Shown here one piece after another: positions 251-45,652 of a stretch of DNA of 64,000 nt. Position numbers and translations under genes: made by a program. Position 1 is the stretch's first letter. Every line of letters starts with the position of its first letter. Origin of the DNA: Salpingoeca rosetta (Eukaryota > Protista > Choanoflagellata). The stretch covers positions 999,251-1,063,250 of the forward strand of contig JAWQFM010000027.1 of assembly GCA_033442325.1 (NCBI GenBank). Direction: 5' to 3'. A model generated the notes under the pieces. It was not told where the DNA came from. It did not search any database and saw only the letters and a list, made by a program, of their open reading frames with translations.

Positions 251-885
251 AGTGCGTGAGTGTGTGAGTGTGTGAGTGTGTGAGTGAGTGTGAGTGAGTG
301 TGAGTGTGTGAATGAGCACAAGTGTGAGTGAGCACAAGTGTGAGTGAGCACAAGTGTGAGTGAGTGTGAGTGAGTTCATCAACCTCTTTATGTCTGGTGC
401 ATGCGCACTTGACTTGTACCACTAACCCCTTTGCTCACTCTCACCACTCACACCCACCACAACATTGCCCCCCCCCACCCATCACACACACACGTCAGAT
501 GAAGTGTTGGTGACTGGGCGGCACACAAAGGCGTTGTGATGCGACGCAGCATGCAGTTTGCAGGTGCAATTTGGGGAATAACGGAGGGCAAGAGCGAGCC
601 GGCGATTTGAGAGCAAATGAGGCACATATGCGTGTAGATGTGGGTGGCAAAAAAGAAACAAGCAGCAAGCGCGGCAACAAGAGCGGCTGCCAAAGGCACC
701 AGGTCACATGTTCTAGCGGCAGGGAGCAGATACAACAAGACCAAAGCGGGATGCGGCAGCACAACAGGGATGTGATGAGATGATGAAGACGAACGAGAAG
801 AAGAAAATGATGATGATGACGATGATGATGCGAAGAGCAATGGGAAGCAGGCCGTGTGTGTGTGCGCGCGCGTGTGTGTGTCGAT

Positions 886-12503
<11,618 letters not shown>

Positions 12504-26303: not shown

Positions 26304-27573
26304 TTAGACGTTCATGTTGAGGAGGAGGTTCTTGCCGCCGGGGAGGTACGCCACGTTCCTTGATCGCGACAGCGTGCCAGCAATGTCCTTGGCAGCCTGT
26401 TGTTGACGTGGGCCATAGTGGTGGTGGTGGACGATGATGAAGCAGAGAGAAGAGAGGAGAGAGAAAAGAGAGAGTGAGTGTGTGAGTGTGCGCGTGTGCA
26501 AGAGAGAGAGAGTGTGTGTGTGAGTGAGTGAGTGAGTGGTGTGTGTGTGTGTATGTGTGTGTGAGCCAGAAACGAAGGCATACAAACAAAGCACAGCATT
26601 AGCGCAAAGTGCAGGGCAAGCCATGGAAGATGCACACGCGAGAGAAAGAGCAAGCACAAAACAGCGGACCTCAATCTTCCTGAGCTCGATGAGACCGGTG
26701 CCGTGCTCCTGCAGGGCGTTGCTGATCAGCTTGGCCGCCTGTGGCGTCGCGGCCGCGCACACGCGTGAAGAGAAGGGGGAACAGGCGTTAGTGAGTGAAT
26801 AAGAACGGTGAGAATGGGGGGGGGGGGAGAGGGTTCGAGTTTGTGAGTGTGTAACACCACACGGGAACGCAAGAAAAAAGAACACATCACCAATCACCAC
26901 AACGCACATCATCACAATACACCATAGCACAACAAAGCGGCCGCGCAAACAAGGCACAAAGTCGCGTGTGTGCGCACCTTGGAGTCACCCTCGGCGCGGA
27001 TGATGTTTGCAATCTTCTCCTGCTCTGCGCGCTCGACAAGGAAGCGGGCGCGCTCCGCCTCCTGCTGCGCAACCTGCTTCAGCTCGACGGCGTGGGTGAA
27101 CTCGTGGCCAAAGGTGAGGTGGGTGATGGAGATGTCGTCCAGGATGATGTGGAAGTCGCGGGCGCGCGAGTTGAGGGCCTCGCGGCACTTCATCGACACA
27201 ATCTCACGCTGCGTAATCAGCTCAGCCGCATCGTGCTGGGCCTGCGGATACAGGTAAGATGGGGATGAACAAGGGTGCGGGTGCGGGTGGGGTGGGGAAG
27301 AGGTGTCGGAAGGGAAGAGAGAGGGACGTGCAGTGGTGAGTGGGATGCGGCAGTAGTGGTTAGTGTGAAACGCAGAGGGTGGCTGGTGTGACACAGTTAA
27401 CAACGCGAAGACACATGCCGGCCAGCTACGTACCACAACGGCCTTGAGGATTTCGTGACCAATGGAGGGAAGCACACGCTCTGCGTAATCGGTACCGTAG
27501 TTCTGAACGCAGTCATGTGCAATTTTGTGTGTGTGTGTGTGTGTGCGTGTGTGTGTGTGTGTGTTGTGTTGGG

Positions 27574-27635
<62 letters not shown>

Positions 27636-28357
27636 TGTTGGGAGTTTGTTTGTGTGTGTGTGTGTGTGTGTTGGGAATTTGTTTGTGAGTGCCAAAGGGT
27701 TGGGAAGGAGAAGAAGCATGCGAAAGCGCGCAAGAGCCGCGACGAGCGCACGCAGAAGCACAAAGCAGGCCACACACACGAGAGCATCACACGAAGCCCA
27801 ATGTGGCCGAGACAGACAAACCTTGAAGATCCAAGGGAGAGACTTGACCTCCGGCCTGTAGAGGATACGGAGTGTGATGTTGACGTTCTGCAAATCTGTG
27901 GATGGAGAGAGGGAGAGGGAGGTTGAGAGGGGTCACAGCGTTGATGTGTGTGTGTGTGTGTATTTGCGCATGACTTGTGCGAGGGTGCATGGCTTGTGGC
28001 TATGACCGAAAACCACACGACCGACAAGACAAGACAAGAGTTAGCAAACAAAAGCAGTGCTGTTGGCTACCTTTGCTTGGTGTGGTGACGGGGATGTTGC
28101 GGGGCTGGCTGCGCACGTCGTAGATGATGGGGCGCTGCACAACGGGAATCATAAAGTGGGTGCCCTCGGGCCTCACAATCTCAGACACACCACGGAACTG
28201 ATCGAAGATGACTGCGCGGTGGCCACCGTCGACTGTGTGTCGTGGAGTGTGTGCATGAGTGTGCATTGTGTGAGTGGAGGAGTGCGAGGCAAGGAGACGA
28301 AAAAGAAGGATGAGTGCCAGAGCTTGGGGGGAAATAGTGCGGCAACAACCCCGCCAT

Positions 28358-31440: not shown

Positions 31441-35597
<4,157 letters not shown>

Positions 35598-36548: not shown

Positions 36549-37670
36549 CTAGGTTGTCTTGCGAAGACGGTTGAAGTAGTCTTGCACGTCCATCTTGCCC
36601 CTGCCGCCCGTTTGATCCTCAAGACGCGCGGCCTCGTTCACCTCAGTGACGACTTTCGCGCTCCGGCGAAGGTCGTCGTCCACCGCTGCCCAAAACCGCT
36701 GCTGAATCAGGTCATACAGGATGCAGTCGGTCCACAGCACCTGGCAGAAGAGGTCGCGCGTTGCCTGCGACACAACGACGGGGCCCTTCCCAACCTTCTT
36801 CAGGTGCGGGTAAACCACGTCCTTGTACGTCATATTGAGGTCTCGCTTGAGCAGCGCCATGGACAGGTCCCACTCCTCGTAAAGCAGCACAAAGTCAAGC
36901 GAATCGACAAACTCCTTTGCACGCTGCCGGAAGTTTGCGCTCTCCCGTGGCTCGTAGTCGTTTGCCAGGCCAAAGTCAAAGGCGTAGCCGATAAAGTGCA
37001 GTTGTCGCGCGTACTTGGCCACGTCGTCTCGCACCTCCGAGAGCGCGATGCGGTGGGTGGCCTCGCGCAACCATGCCTCGCGAATGTCGTTGCGGTCGAA
37101 GTGCAATTGCTGCTGGAGCTTCTTGTTGTTGTAGTAGCCGAGCGCTGAGATGAACCGGGTGATGGGGTCGCGCACGATGGTGAAGATCTTGGGGCGGTCG
37201 GGCGCCATGAGCTTGAGCAGCGTGGTGCGGGATGTCTCTGTCCAGCGAATGTGGGAGATGGCCGCCTTGAAGTGGAGCGGGTCGCGCCCGCACAAGGTGT
37301 GCGCCGGGTCGTCAAACTCTCGCGGGTACCCCAGGTGGTCATAGCAGGGAACGGCCGGCTTCAGGCCGCGACGCTCCAGCGCCTGCGCAAGCATGACAGT
37401 CACGCTCGACGACCCCGTCTTGTGCGTCTTGATGAACACAAATCCAGGAATGTCATCATCGGTGGTTGTGTTGCTTCGGGGTTGGTTACCAGCGTTCATG
37501 CTGTTGCTGCGGACACTGCGGGCGCTGTGGCGGTTGTAGGTGGCAAAGCTGCCTCCTGCCCCAAAGTCTGCACGTGTGTTGATGATGGACAAGGCAATCA
37601 CCAGCAGGACGAGCACTGCTGAGGGGTGAAGCTGCGGCCGTTGCCGCAACCGATGAAAAGCAGCTACCAT
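36549..37670 (-). CDS. Galactose-3-O-sulfotransferase-family type II membrane protein, intronless
   Basis: N-terminal signal anchor, 5'-PSB motif FIKTHKTGSSSV, 3'-PB motif TIVRDP..RFIS, and LDFVLLYEEWDLSMALLK / DCILYD segments typical of GAL3ST-like enzymes. Confidence 0.88.
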   Translation of the reverse strand: MVAAFHRLRQRPQLHPSAVLVLLVIALSIINTRADFGAGGSFATYNRHSARSVRSNSMNAGNQPRSNTTTDDDIPGFVFIKTHKTGSSSVTVMLAQALERRGLKPAVPCYDHLGYPREFDDPAHTLCGRDPLHFKAAISHIRWTETSRTTLLKLMAPDRPKIFTIVRDPITRFISALGYYNNKKLQQQLHFDRNDIREAWLREATHRIALSEVRDDVAKYARQLHFIGYAFDFGLANDYEPRESANFRQRAKEFVDSLDFVLLYEEWDLSMALLKRDLNMTYKDVVYPHLKKVGKGPVVVSQATRDLFCQVLWTDCILYDLIQQRFWAAVDDDLRRSAKVVTEVNEAARLEDQTGGRGKMDVQDYFNRLRKTT

Positions 37671-38384
37671 TGTGTGTGCTGGTGTGTGCTGGTGTGTGTG
37701 TGTGCGCGTGCGTGCGTGAGTGTGTGTGTGTGTGTGTGTGGGGGGGGGGTGTATGCGAGTGCGTGTGGGTATGCGCGCGTGCGTGTGCGTCGCTGGACTT
37801 GTGTACTGCGTTGCTCTTTGTCTTTGTCAGGTCAGGGCGTCACCATCAACGCTGTGAATGTCGTGGTGGCGTGAGCGTTGTGTGGCTGGTTGTCCAATGA
37901 TCCAACACAGCACTACAGCGCATATCGTTGCAACCAACCACTGAGCAGTGCTTGATTGGTCGGTCACGTCACAAGATTGGAGCAGAGACAAAGGGTTGCG
38001 TGAGGTGTTCACTTGGGTCATTGCTTCCCTTCGAATTCCGCAACACACGCCGGAGGCGGGAATTCCGTTACACACTGTTCGTGGCGTGTCCCAGCCACTG
38101 TTGTGTGCGTGCTGGCGGTGGCGGGCCCGTTCGTCGTCAGTGCTGGTGTGGGAATCAGACTGCCGTTGTGACGACGGCCCAAACACTCTGGAGCTCGCGC
38201 TGCTTGACACGAAGCAATCGCTCGCCTTGACGTTCGGGGACGCGCAAACAGCACATCAAGCAAGCGAGCAAAATTTAGCCCACAATGGTTGGGTCAGTGA
38301 CGAAAATGACGTCATCGATTGGGAACGCACGCGTGCACGCATGCAACAACCGCAATGCGCGTCCTCCTTGGTGACTGTGTGTGC

Positions 38385-38508
<124 letters not shown>

Positions 38509-38766: not shown

Positions 38767-39248
38767 CTCTGCTTCGGGTCATGGTGGTGCGCCCTCGTCT
38801 TCTCTTTGCTCGCCCACTGCATTGCAGCATTGCGCTGCAGATCTTGGTGGCGGTTTGTGGCGGGGCTTCGTGTTGCTGTATGCGGTGCTGCTTGGGGAGC
38901 AGGTATCCAGCATGCAAGCCGCCGGCTATGCGGGGGCGCTGTTGTCGTTTCTGATCGACGGTGCCGTGGGAGAGTCGGAGTGAAATAGACAAGTGCCGTC
39001 AACAAGCGCAATTGTGTCCTGTGCATTTGGGATTGTCACAGAAACTGAAACATGTGGGCATCGCAAATTAAGGAAGGAAGGAAACGCGGAAACGGGCGTG
39101 GTGTTGAAGAGACGCGGGGGCAACAGGCGCTTTGAGAAGGAACAGGATGGCCGGTTTAAGAAAGAAAAGAAACAGCACTCACACAATGCAGGCTGTGCGT
39201 GAACGCAAAAGTACACACACAATGCAGACTGTGCATGAACGCAAACGT

Positions 39249-39306
<58 letters not shown>

Positions 39307-39353
39307 CAACAACAAAGGTTGCATGTGAACGACATCGTCTCCACTCTTGGTGT

Positions 39354-41349
39354 TCATGGCAGGGTTGACAAGTGCGACAAATAGGCGCCCATGTCCACCT
39401 TCACAAACACCTTGGCAAATGGGAGGACCTGCGCCTCTTGCGAAACGACGTACTCCTCAAAGGCAAACGTGCCAGGTGTGGGCGTGGCCTGTAAGTTGGT
39501 GGCGCGTGTCACCTGCGCATAGTGGGTGTCTTGGCTTTCATCAAAAGGCTTCCCATAGTAGGAGCATTCATTCGAGCCATGGGGGTAATCTGCGGCCCGG
39601 GTGATCGGGTATGCCAGGCCAACGCTGGCAGCGCACAGGAGCATCACGTGCTCTCCATTTGCATTGGATGAGCGCAAATCACCATTCAACAAAACACGCG
39701 TGGAGTACCCTGCGGCATAGCTTGTCTGCGGTGTGAGGTAGATGCCAGATCCGAAGAAGCCACGGTCGCCCGGGCTGCTAAAGTTCGCTGCCCCGCACGC
39801 ACTGATGCTGTCAGCGACAGCCTCGTCACACCCATGGAAACCCACAAGGATGTTGACGTGCTTCAAGCCGGTGCGTGTTTTTGCAAACTGCATCTTGAGT
39901 TGTTTGAGCATGGCGCGCTTCTCTGGATCACCAAGCCCAAAGTCCTTGTTGAATTTGTTTGTTGTTTTCGTGTCACCACGACGCGTTGCCGACCGCTCCA
40001 CCTGCGCTTTGAACGCCCGCAGCATCATGGTGGACTTGATCATCTCCACGCGCGACAGGGTGAGGCCCGGCGTCATCCGGCTCTCTATCCACCGGTACAA
40101 GTCAGTGTCTGGTGGCAGTGGTGCTGAATACACTCCATGTTCACTTGGCCCCCTCCATGGAAGCTGCTCATCAAAGGCATCGTCGAGCCGCCATGCAGGG
40201 TGGTGCCATTCGTGGTCGCGCAACTGCCAAGACGGCATGACAGGTGGCGGATGCGCGGGCGCCTGCAGCAACAGATCGCCAACGCGATCGGACACTGGGT
40301 TCTGGCTTTCCCTGTGGTGCGTGGACGTGACGAGCTCGTCTGGGTCCTTGCCTGTCAGGTCCCCAAGCTTGTGAGCGGCTGGGTATTTCTCGTGGCGCTT
40401 CAGGTGTTTTGTGCTGAGGACGAGGTGGACATGGTCAATCCCTCTTGCTTCCCCTTGTAGCACAGACAGCACCTGTCATCAACACCGCAAGTGAGCAGAG
40501 GATGGAATGAGGGTGAAAAATCAAAGCTGGCCATTCGCTGGCAAGTGAAGGGACAACACAACGCAAGCTCACACACAACACACACACGCCCACAAGCACT
40601 CACATTCGCTCACAAACTGACTTTTGTCATGAACGGCAGGGCCTTGTGCTCTGCGCCAGAAGGCGCCCGCACCCAGACGTCCACTTCTCGTTCGCCTCGC
40701 AGCAGTCCGAGGCACTGCACGCCATCGTGTTCACAGAAAAAGGCGTCTGGCCACACCTTCAGCGTTGCGCCAAAAGACTTGTGCAACAAAGTCTGCACGT
40801 GTGGGAAGAAGCCAGGTGGTAATGCAAGTGCTTTGCTCTCGACCACCAGCAGTCGTCCACCGTAGACGGGCCAGAAGCCCGTTCGAGGCCAGGCGGTTGC
40901 GAGATCGGCCTTCTTCTCAACACGGCTCGGCAGCATGAATTGCCGCTGGCCATCGTTCGAAGGCGGCAGCTCGAAGCAGAGGAGCGTGTGCTGCAGCACG
41001 CTGATGACAAGATCTGCGGTGGCAATGCCTCGGAATGCGGTTTCCAGGTCCGTGAAGGTCACGACGCCTTTCTTTGTGATGGAGCCTTGCTGCACGCCAT
41101 CCGGCGTCAGCGCTCTCCCCAACACGTCATGAAGCAGCCAGTTCGGGTCGACGAAGACGAAGTCCGCCAGGGAGGGCGTGCTGGAGTACCAGAGCAGATC
41201 GCCGCGTGTGTGGAGGTACCTGTGGACATGCAAAAAGTATGGGTTAGCAGGGAGTGGAGGGTGTAAACGCGCAACACATGATTGAGGGATGAAAGTGTGA
41301 CTACCATGAAACTCCTCAACTCCTACGGCCAAACACACACGCACACACG

Positions 41350-41408
<59 letters not shown>

Positions 41409-44400
41409 ACACGCACACACACACACACACATACACACACCAAAAGCACACACGCACACATTGTACTTGCCTGAGCGTTTGGTGGAAGGTGCCCTCTTGG
41501 ATCGCGGAGATGAGGTCGATGCCATTCCCGCTGCCACGAACAAAGTCCAATAAATCACCCACGCTCCACATCGCCTTGTTCTTCACTGCTTTCTTTAAGG
41601 CCCCTGCCACTTCATTCACCACCTGTGGCACCAACACCTCTCGCCCTCTCAGCCAATGCCAATGGTCAACAAGCTGTGATCGGAGCACATCAAAACCGGC
41701 CTCGCCGCCCTGATGGCAGTTGAGAGTGATGAAGCTGTCTTGGATATCGACGATGTCGCCAAATAAGAGCGAAGAACCGGGTTTGGTTGATTGTCTCCTC
41801 AGGTCCGCGACCATCGCTGTACCCCAGGGCGGATGACCATGTTCATCAACAAGCGCCTTATCGCGAGCAAGATCCCTCTTGGTGCCCGCGATCACGACGC
41901 GCGGCTTCACCTCTTCCATGGCACCGCCGTCTGCCGTTGCTGTGGCTGCTGCAATGCCCTGCTGCAGTCGCGTGCAGATGAACTGCAGCCAGTAGTTGGC
42001 GCGCTCCTTCACATGTTCTTTAGGCTCAGAGAGGTCGACGCAGACGACAAAGGCAGCGAAGCGATCCGACATCATCAGCGTGTGGATGACGTGATATGCG
42101 AGCTGCCCACCAAAATCGTACACGCGAAGAGAAGCAGCGTTGTCACCGTCGCTGCCTTGGCTTGTGGTGTCTTTCAGCTTCATTTCACACACCCGAATGC
42201 CGGGTGTGCGCTCGTTTGAGCGGTCTGGGTCATTTGCTGGTTGGAAGATGGTCCGTGTGAAGCGGCGAAACAGACTGCCGGGAAGCGACTCAATCATGGT
42301 CGTCTTGCCGATGCCGTAGTCGCCGCAGACGAACACCTTCGCTGTCTCAAGAGGGACGGAGCCTGTTTCTAGCAGCCTGAGAAGATCGAGCCGGTCTTGA
42401 TAGGCGGCCTTGGCGGAAGAGTCAAACTTGTCCTCTGAATCAAAAGGCCTGAGGAGAAGAAGAAAGCAGAGTGGACGGTGAATGAGGTTCGGTGTGAAGG
42501 GTGGTTTGAACAAGAGTAAGTCTGTCACTGTACTGCTGTACGAACTCACGCGAAGACAACGTTGATGTCTGGCTGCTTGGTGCGGAGCGTGGCCAGTGCA
42601 CGGGCAACTGCAGTGGAGGATTTGAGCTTGTCCTCAAACAGCCTGTGATGCCGTGAAGAGGGAATGTGAGATGAAAGAAATTGAACTGAAATTGATTCGG
42701 TGCATGTGGGTGGAGCAAGGTCGCAAGCACACGAAACTCACCGAATCTTAGCCTTGGCGTCGATGTGTTGCAGCTGCTTCAGCACATTGACCATGCCACG
42801 CTCCGTGATACGATTGCGGCCAATGCTGTTGGATGAGATGGAGAAACAGGTGAGTTGGCGACAGGAACGAAGCGGGTCACTGTTGCAATCAGGAACACGC
42901 CCTACTTGCTTGCACCAGGTACGAGCGGCGGCAGTGACAGCGCAACAGCGACGCAGCCCATTTCCATCCATACATGTACATGTGTGCGTGTACACACTCA
43001 CCCGAGCCATGTGAGGGTCGTGTTGTGCTTCAGCATCTCCGCCAACGCCACAGCGCCCTCATCGCCGATGGAGTTGGCCCCCAGGCTGTCAAGATAATGT
43101 GATGCCACACAAAGCGATGGTGCCACATGGGTGAGGAAGAGTGAGTAAGTGCGTGATGATGATTGCTGTGGGTGGCAACACAGTCGTTGAACCACACATG
43201 GGCACATGTGCACATGATAAGGTGCAACAGCAGTGACGCAGCATACATGTGCATGTATGCATGTCCACACTCACTTGAGTCCTGTGAGGGTCGTGTTGTG
43301 CTTCAGCATCTCCGCCAACGCCACAGCGCCCTTATCGCCGACGCGGTTGCGTTCCAGGCTGTCCAGATGGTATAATGCCACGAAGGGCGATGATGCCACA
43401 TGGGTGAGGAAGAGTGCGTGAGTGATGATGATGATTGCTGTGGGTGGCAACACAGTCATTGAACTCATCCTACCCCACCACACGTGTGCACATGAAAAGG
43501 TGCAACAGGCAGTGACGCAGCATACATGTGCATGTGTGCGTGTACACACTCACAAGAGTCGTTCGAGGGTCGTGTTGTGCTTCAGCATCTCCGCCAACGC
43601 CACGGCGCCCTGGTTGCCGATGGAATTGCCCTCCAGGCTGTCAAGACGGTATGGCGAATGCCACACAGGGCGATGATGCCACATGGGTGAGGAAGAGGGA
43701 GTGAGTGCGTGATGATGATTGCTGTGGGTGTCAACACAGTCATCAACCACACATGTGCACATGATAAGGTGCAACGGCAGTGACGCAGCCCCTTTCCATC
43801 CACATATGTGTGCGTGTACACACTCACTAGAGTTCTTTGAGGGCCGTGTTGTGCTTCAGCATCTCCGCCAACGCCACAGCGCCCTCATCGCCGATGGAGT
43901 TGGCCCCCAGGCTGTCAAGATAATGTGATGCCACACAAAGCGATGGTGCCACATGGGTGAGGAAGAGTGAGTAAGTGCGTGATGATGATTGCTGTGGGTG
44001 GCAACACAGTCGTTGAACCACACATGGGCACATGTGCACATGATAAGGTGCAACGGCAGTGACGCAGCATACATGTGTGTGTGCGTGTACACACTCACTT
44101 GAGTCCTGTCATGGTCGTGTTGTGCTTCAGCATCTCCGCCAACACCACGGCGCCCTGGTCGCCTATGGAATTGTTGTCCAGGCTGTCAAGATGGTATGAT
44201 GCCACACAGGGGGATGATGCCACATGGGTGAGGAAGAGCGTGATGATGATTGCTGTGGGTGGCAACACAGTCATCAATCCACACATGTGCACGTGATAAG
44301 GTGCAACGACAGTGACGCAGCATACATGTGTGCATGTGTGCGTGTACACACTCACTAGAGTGTTTCGAGGGCCGTGTTGTGCTTCAACATCTCCGCCAAC

Positions 44401-45652
44401 GCCACGGCGCCCTCATCGCCGATGGAGTTGTTGTACAGGCTGTCAAGACGGTATGGTGGATGCCACACAGGGCGATGATGCCACATGGATGAGGAAGAGT
44501 GAGTGAGTGAGTGCGTGATGATGCTCGCTGTGGGTGGCAACACAGTCATCAACCACACATGTGCACGTGAGAAGGTGCAGGGGCAGTGACGCAGCATACA
44601 TGTGTGCGCATGTGTGCGTGTACACACTCACCTGAGTTCTTCGAGGGTCGTGTTGTGCTTCAGCATCTCCGCCAACGCCGCAGCGCCCTCATCGCCGATG
44701 GAATTCCATCGCAGGCTGTCCAGATGGTATAATGCCACGAAGGGCGATGATGCCACATGGATGAGGAAGAGTGAGTGCGTGCGTGCGTGATGATGATTGT
44801 TGTGGGTGGCAACACAGTCACCAATCCACACATGGGCACGTGTGCACGTGATAAGGTGCAACAGGCAGTGACGCAGCACACATGTGTGTGTGTGTGTGTG
44901 TGCGTGTACACTCACCTGAGTCGTTCGAGGGTCGTGTTGTGCTTCAACATCTCCGCCAACGCCACAGCGCCCTCAGGACCGATGGAGTTGCCCCACAGGC
45001 TGTGCAGACACACAAGAACCGCAGGGAGCGACGGTGAACACACGTCCAAACATGCGCAAGCAGGGGAGGAGAAAGGGGTGCAACATGCAACACCGCCATC
45101 CCAATCAACCATGCATATCACACGATGCAGATTCATCATCACCACGCACTAGAGTCGTTTGAGGCAGGTGTTGTCCTTGAGCGCCTCGGCCACCGCACGC
45201 GCCTCAATGGCGCCGAGGCCATAACCACCCAAGCTGTAATTCCAAATGGTGTGTGTCATGAAATGAGCAAGAAGACTGAGGATCGAGACAGAGCAAAACC
45301 ATGAGGGTGCCAGTCCCAACCTGCCACAAACACACACAGTGTGTCCAGGCGGTGCGAGGGGACAGGACACACACGTGAACACCCAACAGCAAGCCACACC
45401 ACGCTCATTGCAACACAAGGACAAGCCAAGCAGAGAGAGAGGGGAGAATAAGCACAACCACAACAAGTGTCCTTGTGTCCAACACATACATGTTCCAACA
45501 TGTCGTTTTGGTTGCTTTTGCACTCACTTCTCATAATCCCCACACGTGTTGTTGGCGATGGCCCTGATCTTGTGCTTCACCCCATCCATCAGCTTCGTCT
45601 GCGCCAGCAACGCCTCCACCTCCTCCCTCGCTCTCTTCTCTCCGCCGGACAT
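39354..45652 (-). CDS. ROCO protein: RI-like LRR array - Roc GTPase - COR - PARP-like ADP-ribosyltransferase; 15 exons, 1250 aa. Exons 45652-45528, 45233-45150, 44999-44916, 44715-44632, 44439-44356, 44182-44099, 43911-43828, 43637-43554, 43358-43275, 43085-43002, 42825-42742, 42642-42550, 42448-41471, 41219-40622, 40472-39354
   Basis: All junctions are phase-compatible and the spliced length is 3753 nt, or 1251 codons. Roc motifs: GDYGIGKTT (G1), RTPGI (G2), YDFGGQ (G3), GTKRD (G4). COR segments: YLHTRGDLLWY, VFVDPNWL, FMLPS, LPPGFFPHVQ. ART motifs: GFHGC, GFFGSGIYLT, YAAGYS, FEEYVV...QVLP. Confidence 0.93.
43002..44999 (-). repeat. Tandem array of eight exon+intron cassettes (84-nt LRR exon plus 173-200-nt homologous intron, period 257-284 bp)
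   Basis: The exon core cgtgttgtgcttca(g/a)catctccgccaac and intron motifs (gccacatgg.tgaggaagag; gatg..tgctgtgggtggcaacacagtc; aaggtgca...cagtgacgcagc; cactcac) recur in every unit. Confidence 0.97.

Follow-up and report, generated by a model that had tools for sequence, protein, structure and literature searches.

We analysed a 64,000-nt stretch of the Salpingoeca rosetta genome (contig JAWQFM010000027.1, positions 999,251 to 1,063,250; hereafter the window, in whose numbering all positions are given) and found that a minus-strand gene at 45652..39354 encodes leucine-rich repeats (LRRs), a Roc GTPase domain, a COR domain and, by predicted fold and conserved residues, a PARP-type ADP-ribosyltransferase (ART) domain in one polypeptide. 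The structural models indicate that this LRR-Roc-COR-PARP fusion is real and no annotation artefact. The 15 exons of the gene join in phase to give a 3753-nt coding sequence and a 1250-residue protein, which is identical, residue for residue, to the public hypothetical protein PTSG_09285 of S. rosetta. The phase-consistent 15-exon model of an earlier sequence-only reading thus reproduces the public annotation exactly, and its description of about ten ribonuclease-inhibitor-like LRRs, Roc, COR and a C-terminal PARP fold in a single chain is borne out by the Pfam and fold matches given below. The sequence of PTSG_09285 has been public for years, uncharacterised, and the gene is therefore not new as a sequence. 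The window constitutes the final 64 kb of a 1.06-Mb contig in an assembly of 55.4 Mb. Everything functional that we say about PTSG_09285 is inferred.

The continuity of the fusion is carried by COR-B, the second part of the COR domain, which is predicted to be split by intron 14 (149 nt, GT-AG, phase 0, 40473..40621), since both the COR fold matches and a predicted helix run past the exon junction. Exon 14 (598 nt, 40622..41219) encodes COR-A and COR-B up to two thirds of its length, while exon 15 (1119 nt, 39354..40472, ending in the TGA stop codon at 39354..39356) encodes the C-terminal part of COR-B in its first approximately 80 codons (40233..40472), followed by the PARP-type domain. In a model of residues 640-1000, the exon 14/15 junction lies at model residue 240, whereas COR fold matches reach model residues 310-320 (protein residues ~950-960), thus extending 70-80 residues into exon 15, and the helix formed by model residues 230-247 crosses the junction. 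Sub-threshold Pfam COR-B matches in three paralogs cross the same point. As COR-B is completed in the exon that codes for the ART domain, the latter cannot be a separate gene, and we rejected this candidate explanation. An artefact joining a separate PARP gene to an adjoining ROCO gene would fit the observations that Pfam alone leaves about 200 residues unmatched between COR-A and PARP and that no read of the three partly read RNA runs described below crosses the junction with the letters of PTSG_09285 itself. However, we regard it as extremely improbable, since, besides the continuity of COR-B, exons 14 and 15 share one uninterrupted reading frame across an in-phase junction, 12 paralogs with identities as low as 50% preserve this layout and its intron of ~150 nt, and in public models of eight S. 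rosetta paralogs the same protein contains both COR-A and PARP, in six cases along with LRR_6 and a full Roc domain. Additionally, a complete open reading frame from a transcriptome of Salpingoeca infusionum combines COR-A (45.7 bits) and an ART domain of the PTSG_09285-type clade in one frame.

RNA reads contribute to this point in a limited manner. Five RNA-seq reads skip exactly 149 nt at the 40622/40472 junction, where the sequence-only reading had advised a search for spanning reads, with their alignment placed at 40475/40625, three bases off the predicted sites. The apparently non-canonical placement is accounted for by the closest paralog, L013 on chromosome 34, with ACACAG/GT in place of the ACAAAA/GT of PTSG_09285, and the reads carry the letters of L013 (CAG for AAA; T at 40634). 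They consequently prove splicing of the homologous junction in L013 only: spliced reads do exist, but not with the letters of PTSG_09285.

The assignment of the C-terminal domain (residues ~990-1241, 39384..40139) to the PARP family was settled by fold, since sequence-based searches of this region were weak. With Pfam cut-offs of 27 bits for Roc, 35.3 bits for COR-A and 26.7 bits for PARP, the PARP profile scored 24.2 bits on the full protein, below its cut-off, and 27.3 bits on exon 15 alone, above it. Against solved structures, a single-sequence search with the ART domain gave no match, and a profile of 45 sequences gave weak matches at an E-value of ~0.002. A feature search of the ESM Atlas returned no usable match, while a shape search of the same atlas returned generic PARP clusters only. 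The AlphaFold model of exon 15, built on an alignment of 45 relatives, reached a mean predicted local distance difference test score (pLDDT) of 89.8 and a predicted template modelling score of 0.81. Residues 112-363 of this model superimpose on tankyrase-1 with a Z-score of 18.2 and a root-mean-square deviation (rmsd) of 2.8 Å over 189 of 209 residues (VIA), and the model matches PARP15 and PARP12 with Z-scores of 17.7 and 17.6. Foldseek gave an E-value of 1e-10 and a template modelling score of 0.74, normalised by target. The PARP fold that had been proposed for the last exon is hence recovered.

The His-Tyr-Glu set of the predicted ART domain is apparently intact. His1091 (codon 39834..39836), kept in at least 90% of the 45 relatives, is the putative catalytic His and aligns with the FHG His of PARP16. 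Tyr1123 in the motif GSGIYLT (codon 39738..39740), invariant in the 45 relatives, aligns with the GTYLT Tyr of the same enzyme, both equivalences being taken from profile alignment. The presumed catalytic residue Glu1218 in the motif FEEYVV (codon 39453..39455) is likewise invariant among the 45 relatives, and we take its E-Y-V-V segment to correspond to the NEYIVY motif of PARP1, with Glu1218 equivalent to E988. Taking model and conserved residues together, the C-terminus of PTSG_09285 is, as far as prediction allows, a PARP-family member.

The remaining domains identify PTSG_09285, by profile and model, as a ROCO protein through both defining domains. Pfam Roc scored 34.5 bits on the full protein and 37.7 bits on exon 13 alone, both above cut-off, and the domain contains the motifs G1 (GDYGIGKT), G3 (DFGGQ) and G4 (TKRD), all of them conserved among paralogs; the P-loop (G1, residues 395-402, 42301..42324) is conserved in six paralogous proteins. 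The best sequence match of Roc among solved structures is the Methanosarcina barkeri Roco 4wnr. COR-A scored 34.2 bits on the full protein, below cut-off, and 35.3 bits on exon 14 alone, at cut-off. With the COR-A and PARP sequence scores being marginal, both domains were checked by fold. The model of residues 640-1000 is poor and of low confidence in COR-A, with a pLDDT of 70-89 across COR-B. It matches the COR domain of the Chlorobium tepidum Roco with a Z-score of 14.2 over 264 residues, LRRK2 with Z-scores of 11.6 and 10.9 (the latter for COR-B, rmsd 3.9 Å) and LRRK1 with a Z-score of 9.8. The earlier claim of a Roc and a COR domain therefore stands. N-terminal to these, the tandem 28-residue repeats fit the consensus LxxLxLxxNxIGxxGaxxLaxxL of ribonuclease-inhibitor-like LRRs, and Pfam LRR_6 scored 147.7 bits on the full protein.

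The repeats are encoded by ten exons of exactly 84 nt each between 42742 and 45233 (45233-45150, 44999-44916, 44715-44632, 44439-44356, 44182-44099, 43911-43828, 43637-43554, 43358-43275, 43085-43002 and 42825-42742), all of phase 2 and each holding one repeat, starting one base ahead of a codon boundary and stopping two bases past one. The introns between them are of ~170-200 nt and alike among themselves. Upstream, exon 1 (45528..45652, start codon 45652-45650) encodes a 42-residue N-terminal segment without a signal-peptide-like start, which is 72-92% conserved in the paralogs L013, L014 and L020. Downstream, exon 12 (93 nt, 42550..42642) provides a 31-residue linker from the LRRs to Roc, and exon 13 (978 nt, 41471..42448) the Roc domain and the start of COR. 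Thirteen of the introns are GT-AG; the intron after exon 13 is GC-AG, with its donor at 41470, a consensus donor sequence (AG/GCAAGT) and a CTAAC branch site ahead of the acceptor.

PTSG_09285 belongs to a family of about 12 genes of the same domain order. In total, 13 copies of the ART exon (51-100% identity) occur in the genome. For 12 of them, COR and Roc exons lie immediately upstream in the same orientation, with an intron of ~150 nt, and nearly all of these loci also contain 84-nt LRR cassettes. Paralogs on other contigs hold 2-10 cassettes, with repeat sequences that differ strongly in the most distant copies. An ART exon is absent from six more distant COR loci; in the frames scanned, one is followed by TPR repeats and the others by no recognisable domain. 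With regard to paralogs and alternative C-terminal effectors, which the sequence-only reading had brought up, the former are found in a number of about 12, but no alternative effector occurs among the close paralogs, and the distant COR loci are without ART.

Beyond this genome, the whole LRR-Roc-COR-ART protein had no ortholog outside Salpingoeca in the searches run. Word-based searches with Roc-COR, COR-ART and the S. infusionum protein returned only seven S. rosetta paralogs, two distant ROCO proteins and the query itself. The closest ART relatives outside Salpingoeca (P0005, P0007, P0168, P0012, P0008, P0164 and P0017) are metagenomic and share 38-53% identity. In protist and metagenome proteins, this ART clade is fused to ARM (including an LRRK2-type ARM profile), PH, RRM and protein kinase domains, and further to DUF4116 repeats, NHL/EGF and actin-related modules; it looks like a module widely recombined in protists. 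In the literature, we found no paper on a Roc-COR-PARP protein and none naming any of six PTSG gene identifiers from the family, and PARP-evolution surveys that include S. rosetta, among them Perina et al. 2014 (PMC4245714), make no mention of the fusion. The sequence-only reading, which knew of no functional characterisation of such a fusion, is in agreement with this outcome.

The nearest described kind are the bacterial LRR-AP-GTPase-COR-effector proteins, especially LRR-Roc-COR-TIR. Kaur, Iyer, Burroughs and Aravind 2021 (PMC8195603) proposed that LRR-Roc-COR proteins with variable effectors serve in bacterial conflict; their text lists at least 24 effector domains, the NAD+-using TIR domain being a frequent one. 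COR+TIR accounts for 567 entries in their source data, and neither COR+ART nor COR+PARP is among the entries. These proteins share with PTSG_09285 the order of fast-evolving N-terminal LRRs, Roc, COR and C-terminal effector, the occurrence of several paralogs per genome and, TIR like PARP acting on NAD+, the presumed substrate of the effector. However, they are prokaryotic, and bacterial paralogs bear different effectors, while the S. rosetta copies all bear the same ART domain. The Rocos of C. tepidum and M. barkeri (3dpt/3dpu, 4wnr) have the same LRR-Roc-COR layout and give the best COR structure and Roc sequence matches, but are without an enzymatic effector after COR.

Among eukaryotic ROCO proteins, LRRK2, LRRK1 and the Dictyostelium Roco kinases share the LRR-Roc-COR core, but differ in their protein kinase effector followed by WD40, their ARM/ANK N-termini and their nature as single-copy signalling genes, and their sequence similarity to PTSG_09285 is very low (Roc-COR E-value ~1e-6). 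MFHAS1 (MASL1) and DAPK1, also ROCO proteins of eukaryotes, have links to immunity or cell death, the former without an effector domain and the latter with kinase and death domains and without LRRs. Tankyrases 1 and 2, PARP1 and the mono-ARTs PARP12/14/15/16 share the catalytic fold at Z-scores of 17.6-18.2 and rmsd values of 2.5-2.8 Å; in addition to the His and Tyr aligned with PARP16, PTSG_09285 keeps the Glu as in H-Y-E enzymes. Identity to these enzymes is only 12-19%, however, and PTSG_09285 lacks their ankyrin/SAM, WGR, macro and WWE partners. Animal and plant NLRs (NACHT or NB-ARC with LRRs) follow the same scheme, in which an LRR sensor acts through an NTP switch on an effector, and likewise have LRR_6-type LRRs and expanded families with diversifying LRR surfaces, but rely on a STAND ATPase where PTSG_09285 has a Ras-like Roc GTPase, and carry their LRRs at the C-terminal rather than the N-terminal side. 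Pfam gave no NACHT or NB-ARC match on the full protein, leaving Roc as the only NTPase. We therefore reject membership in the NLRs: of the NLR-type logic put forward earlier, the sensor-switch-effector layout is present, but with no STAND NTPase the likeness is one of analogy only.

We propose, with a probability of roughly 0.55, that PTSG_09285 is one cytosolic LRR-Roc-COR-ART protein that would act as a ligand-sensing, GTPase-gated ADP-ribosyltransferase, with a conflict or innate-immunity-like role as its likeliest context, a function that is plausible by analogy with the systems compared above. In this model, the concave face of the LRRs would bind a variable ligand, and binding would be passed on to Roc-COR, where, as in solved ROCO proteins, the GTP state and COR-B-mediated dimerisation could change. 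This change would release or position the ART domain, which may then ADP-ribosylate itself or targets under consumption of NAD+, the output being polymer, mono-ADP-ribose or NAD+ loss.

The conflict context is considered likeliest because of the family expansion, the position at contig ends and the diversification of the LRRs. Of the 13 ART loci, 11 lie no more than 65 kb from a contig end (binomial P ~1e-7 for a zone making up 16% of the genome), a figure to be read with the caution that this distance was picked after looking and that the copies are not independent duplications. TTAGGG arrays are present at some contig ends. Across the LRR cassettes, the helix GAVALAEMLKHNTT is nearly invariant, while the exposed positions, set in advance as 2, 3, 5, 25 and 26 in LxxLxLxxNxL, are highly variable. 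The ratio of non-synonymous to synonymous substitutions (dN/dS) at these positions is 3.6 among the repeats of PTSG_09285 and 1.76 over 25 repeats of three genes, compared to 0.34-0.36 at the remaining positions, values that are rough and indicative only, since paralogous repeats are compared at five codons per repeat. Substitutions at the exposed positions accordingly look diversifying. In the COR and ART exons, dN/dS against paralogs is 0.16-0.31 (against L013, 0.18 and 0.25, respectively), which indicates purifying selection on both; Roc is likewise judged to be under purifying selection.

Besides the choice of distance and the coarse repeat comparison, several observations weigh against this proposal. 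The COR-A and PARP scores are at or just below the curated Pfam cut-offs, the S. infusionum COR-ART protein is without canonical P-loop motifs, and all 12 close paralogs carry the same ART effector, unlike bacterial systems with their differing effectors. No telomere repeat is present within the 64-kb window, so that the term subtelomeric is derived from the distance to contig ends only. We found no biochemical or genetic test of any family member in the literature. Furthermore, the RNA reads do not establish expression of PTSG_09285 itself. Reads were mapped to 39250-43100 from three stranded raw RNA runs of one study, about a quarter of each run being read, and from one contig run; long (GT)n/(CA)n microsatellites were left out as repeats. 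Run X1 covers introns without gaps, is probably DNA and is therefore uninformative on transcripts. Depth is 0-8x over most of the gene, in an orientation that fits minus-strand RNA. At positions distinguishing the copies, however, the reads carry paralog letters (23/23 reads at 40634, 6/6 at 41579 and 5/5 at 42040), those of L013 in the COR and ART region and of L020 in the Roc region, and much of the mapped RNA must therefore be cross-mapping. These letters, together with the five junction reads matching L013, would also be expected if PTSG_09285 were a silent or decaying member of a real family. We consider this improbable, since the reading frame is open through all 15 exons, no splice site is damaged, the catalytic and nucleotide-binding motifs are complete and the dN/dS of the COR and ART exons against the closest paralog falls within the low range given above. 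In addition, the RNA sample was restricted to a part of one study, and members of such families may often be expressed conditionally.

A different objection concerns function rather than activity of the gene. PTSG_09285 could be a housekeeping or developmental signalling ROCO protein comparable to LRRK1/2 or the Dictyostelium Rocos, involved in trafficking, the cytoskeleton or life-stage control, which ADP-ribosylates endogenous substrates instead of phosphorylating them and whose LRRs bind host partners and not foreign ligands. Those eukaryotic ROCO proteins that have been studied well act in endogenous signalling. Elsewhere, the ART clade of PTSG_09285 is joined to ARM, PH, RRM, kinase and actin-related modules, which suggests a general regulatory use, and Perina et al. 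2014 (PMC4245714) link S. rosetta PARPs to actin domains. However, housekeeping signalling would not usually go along with a family that expanded in one lineage to about 12 copies close to contig ends and shows an excess of replacements on the concave LRR face, and no whole-protein ortholog was found outside Salpingoeca in the searches run. We therefore judge this explanation unlikely, although it merits serious consideration. In the other direction, the proposal of a ligand-sensing, GTPase-gated ART can be extended to a subtelomeric family of about 12 intracellular receptors in which a Roc-COR GTPase, in place of a STAND ATPase, couples hypervariable LRRs to ADP-ribosylation or NAD+ depletion. 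This would constitute a third, GTPase-based route to NLR-like immunity or cell suicide and a eukaryotic counterpart of bacterial LRR-Roc-COR-TIR. We put this extension forward tentatively, as possible yet rather doubtful.

Some further loci and features deserve mention. L021 (G000:C27:1-7400), at the opposite end of the same contig, shows an ART match at 5983-6858 covering query residues 82-368 only, with no Roc or COR match in 6 kb upstream; it represents either a fragment or a family copy whose N-terminus differs. In L016 (G000:C25:47400-57399), two overlapping matches to the COR exon lie in different frames, pointing to a frameshift or an additional intron, and in L018 (G000:C20:1226340-1236339) the Roc match begins at query residue 105, with the nearest LRR cassettes 6 kb off; both are possibly damaged family members. 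The distant COR locus L026 (G000:C29:14791-24790, 42% identity) is accompanied downstream by a 787-residue TPR frame (396-2756, minus strand; TPR_12, 454.8 bits), and could represent a ROCO ending in TPRs or a COR locus plus a neighbouring gene. In L028 (G000:C2:390061-400060), all three sense frames are open for ~6 kb beside the COR match, suggesting an N stretch or very low-complexity sequence. The (GT)n/(CA)n microsatellites within and around PTSG_09285 lie at 41330-41460, 39230-39320 and 38330-38480, within intron 13 and just 3' of the stop codon. The adjoining minus-strand open reading frames at 36549-37670, 31441-33036 and 26912-28051 match a galactose-3-O-sulfotransferase, a DEAD-box helicase and a Band 7/SPFH protein, none of which has an evident connection with PTSG_09285.

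Interest in ROCO proteins stems largely from the role of LRRK2 in Parkinson's disease, and there is still debate on how the LRRs and Roc-COR control the effector. A ROCO protein that naturally acts through ADP-ribosylation would offer an independent read-out of this control. Since S. rosetta can be transfected and edited, the idea is testable. If a defence role holds true, the sister group of animals would share the combination of sensor, NTP switch and NAD+-using effector known from bacterial Roc-COR-TIR proteins and from TIR and PARP immunity in plants and animals, and GTPase-based receptors could join the catalogue of pre-metazoan immunity.

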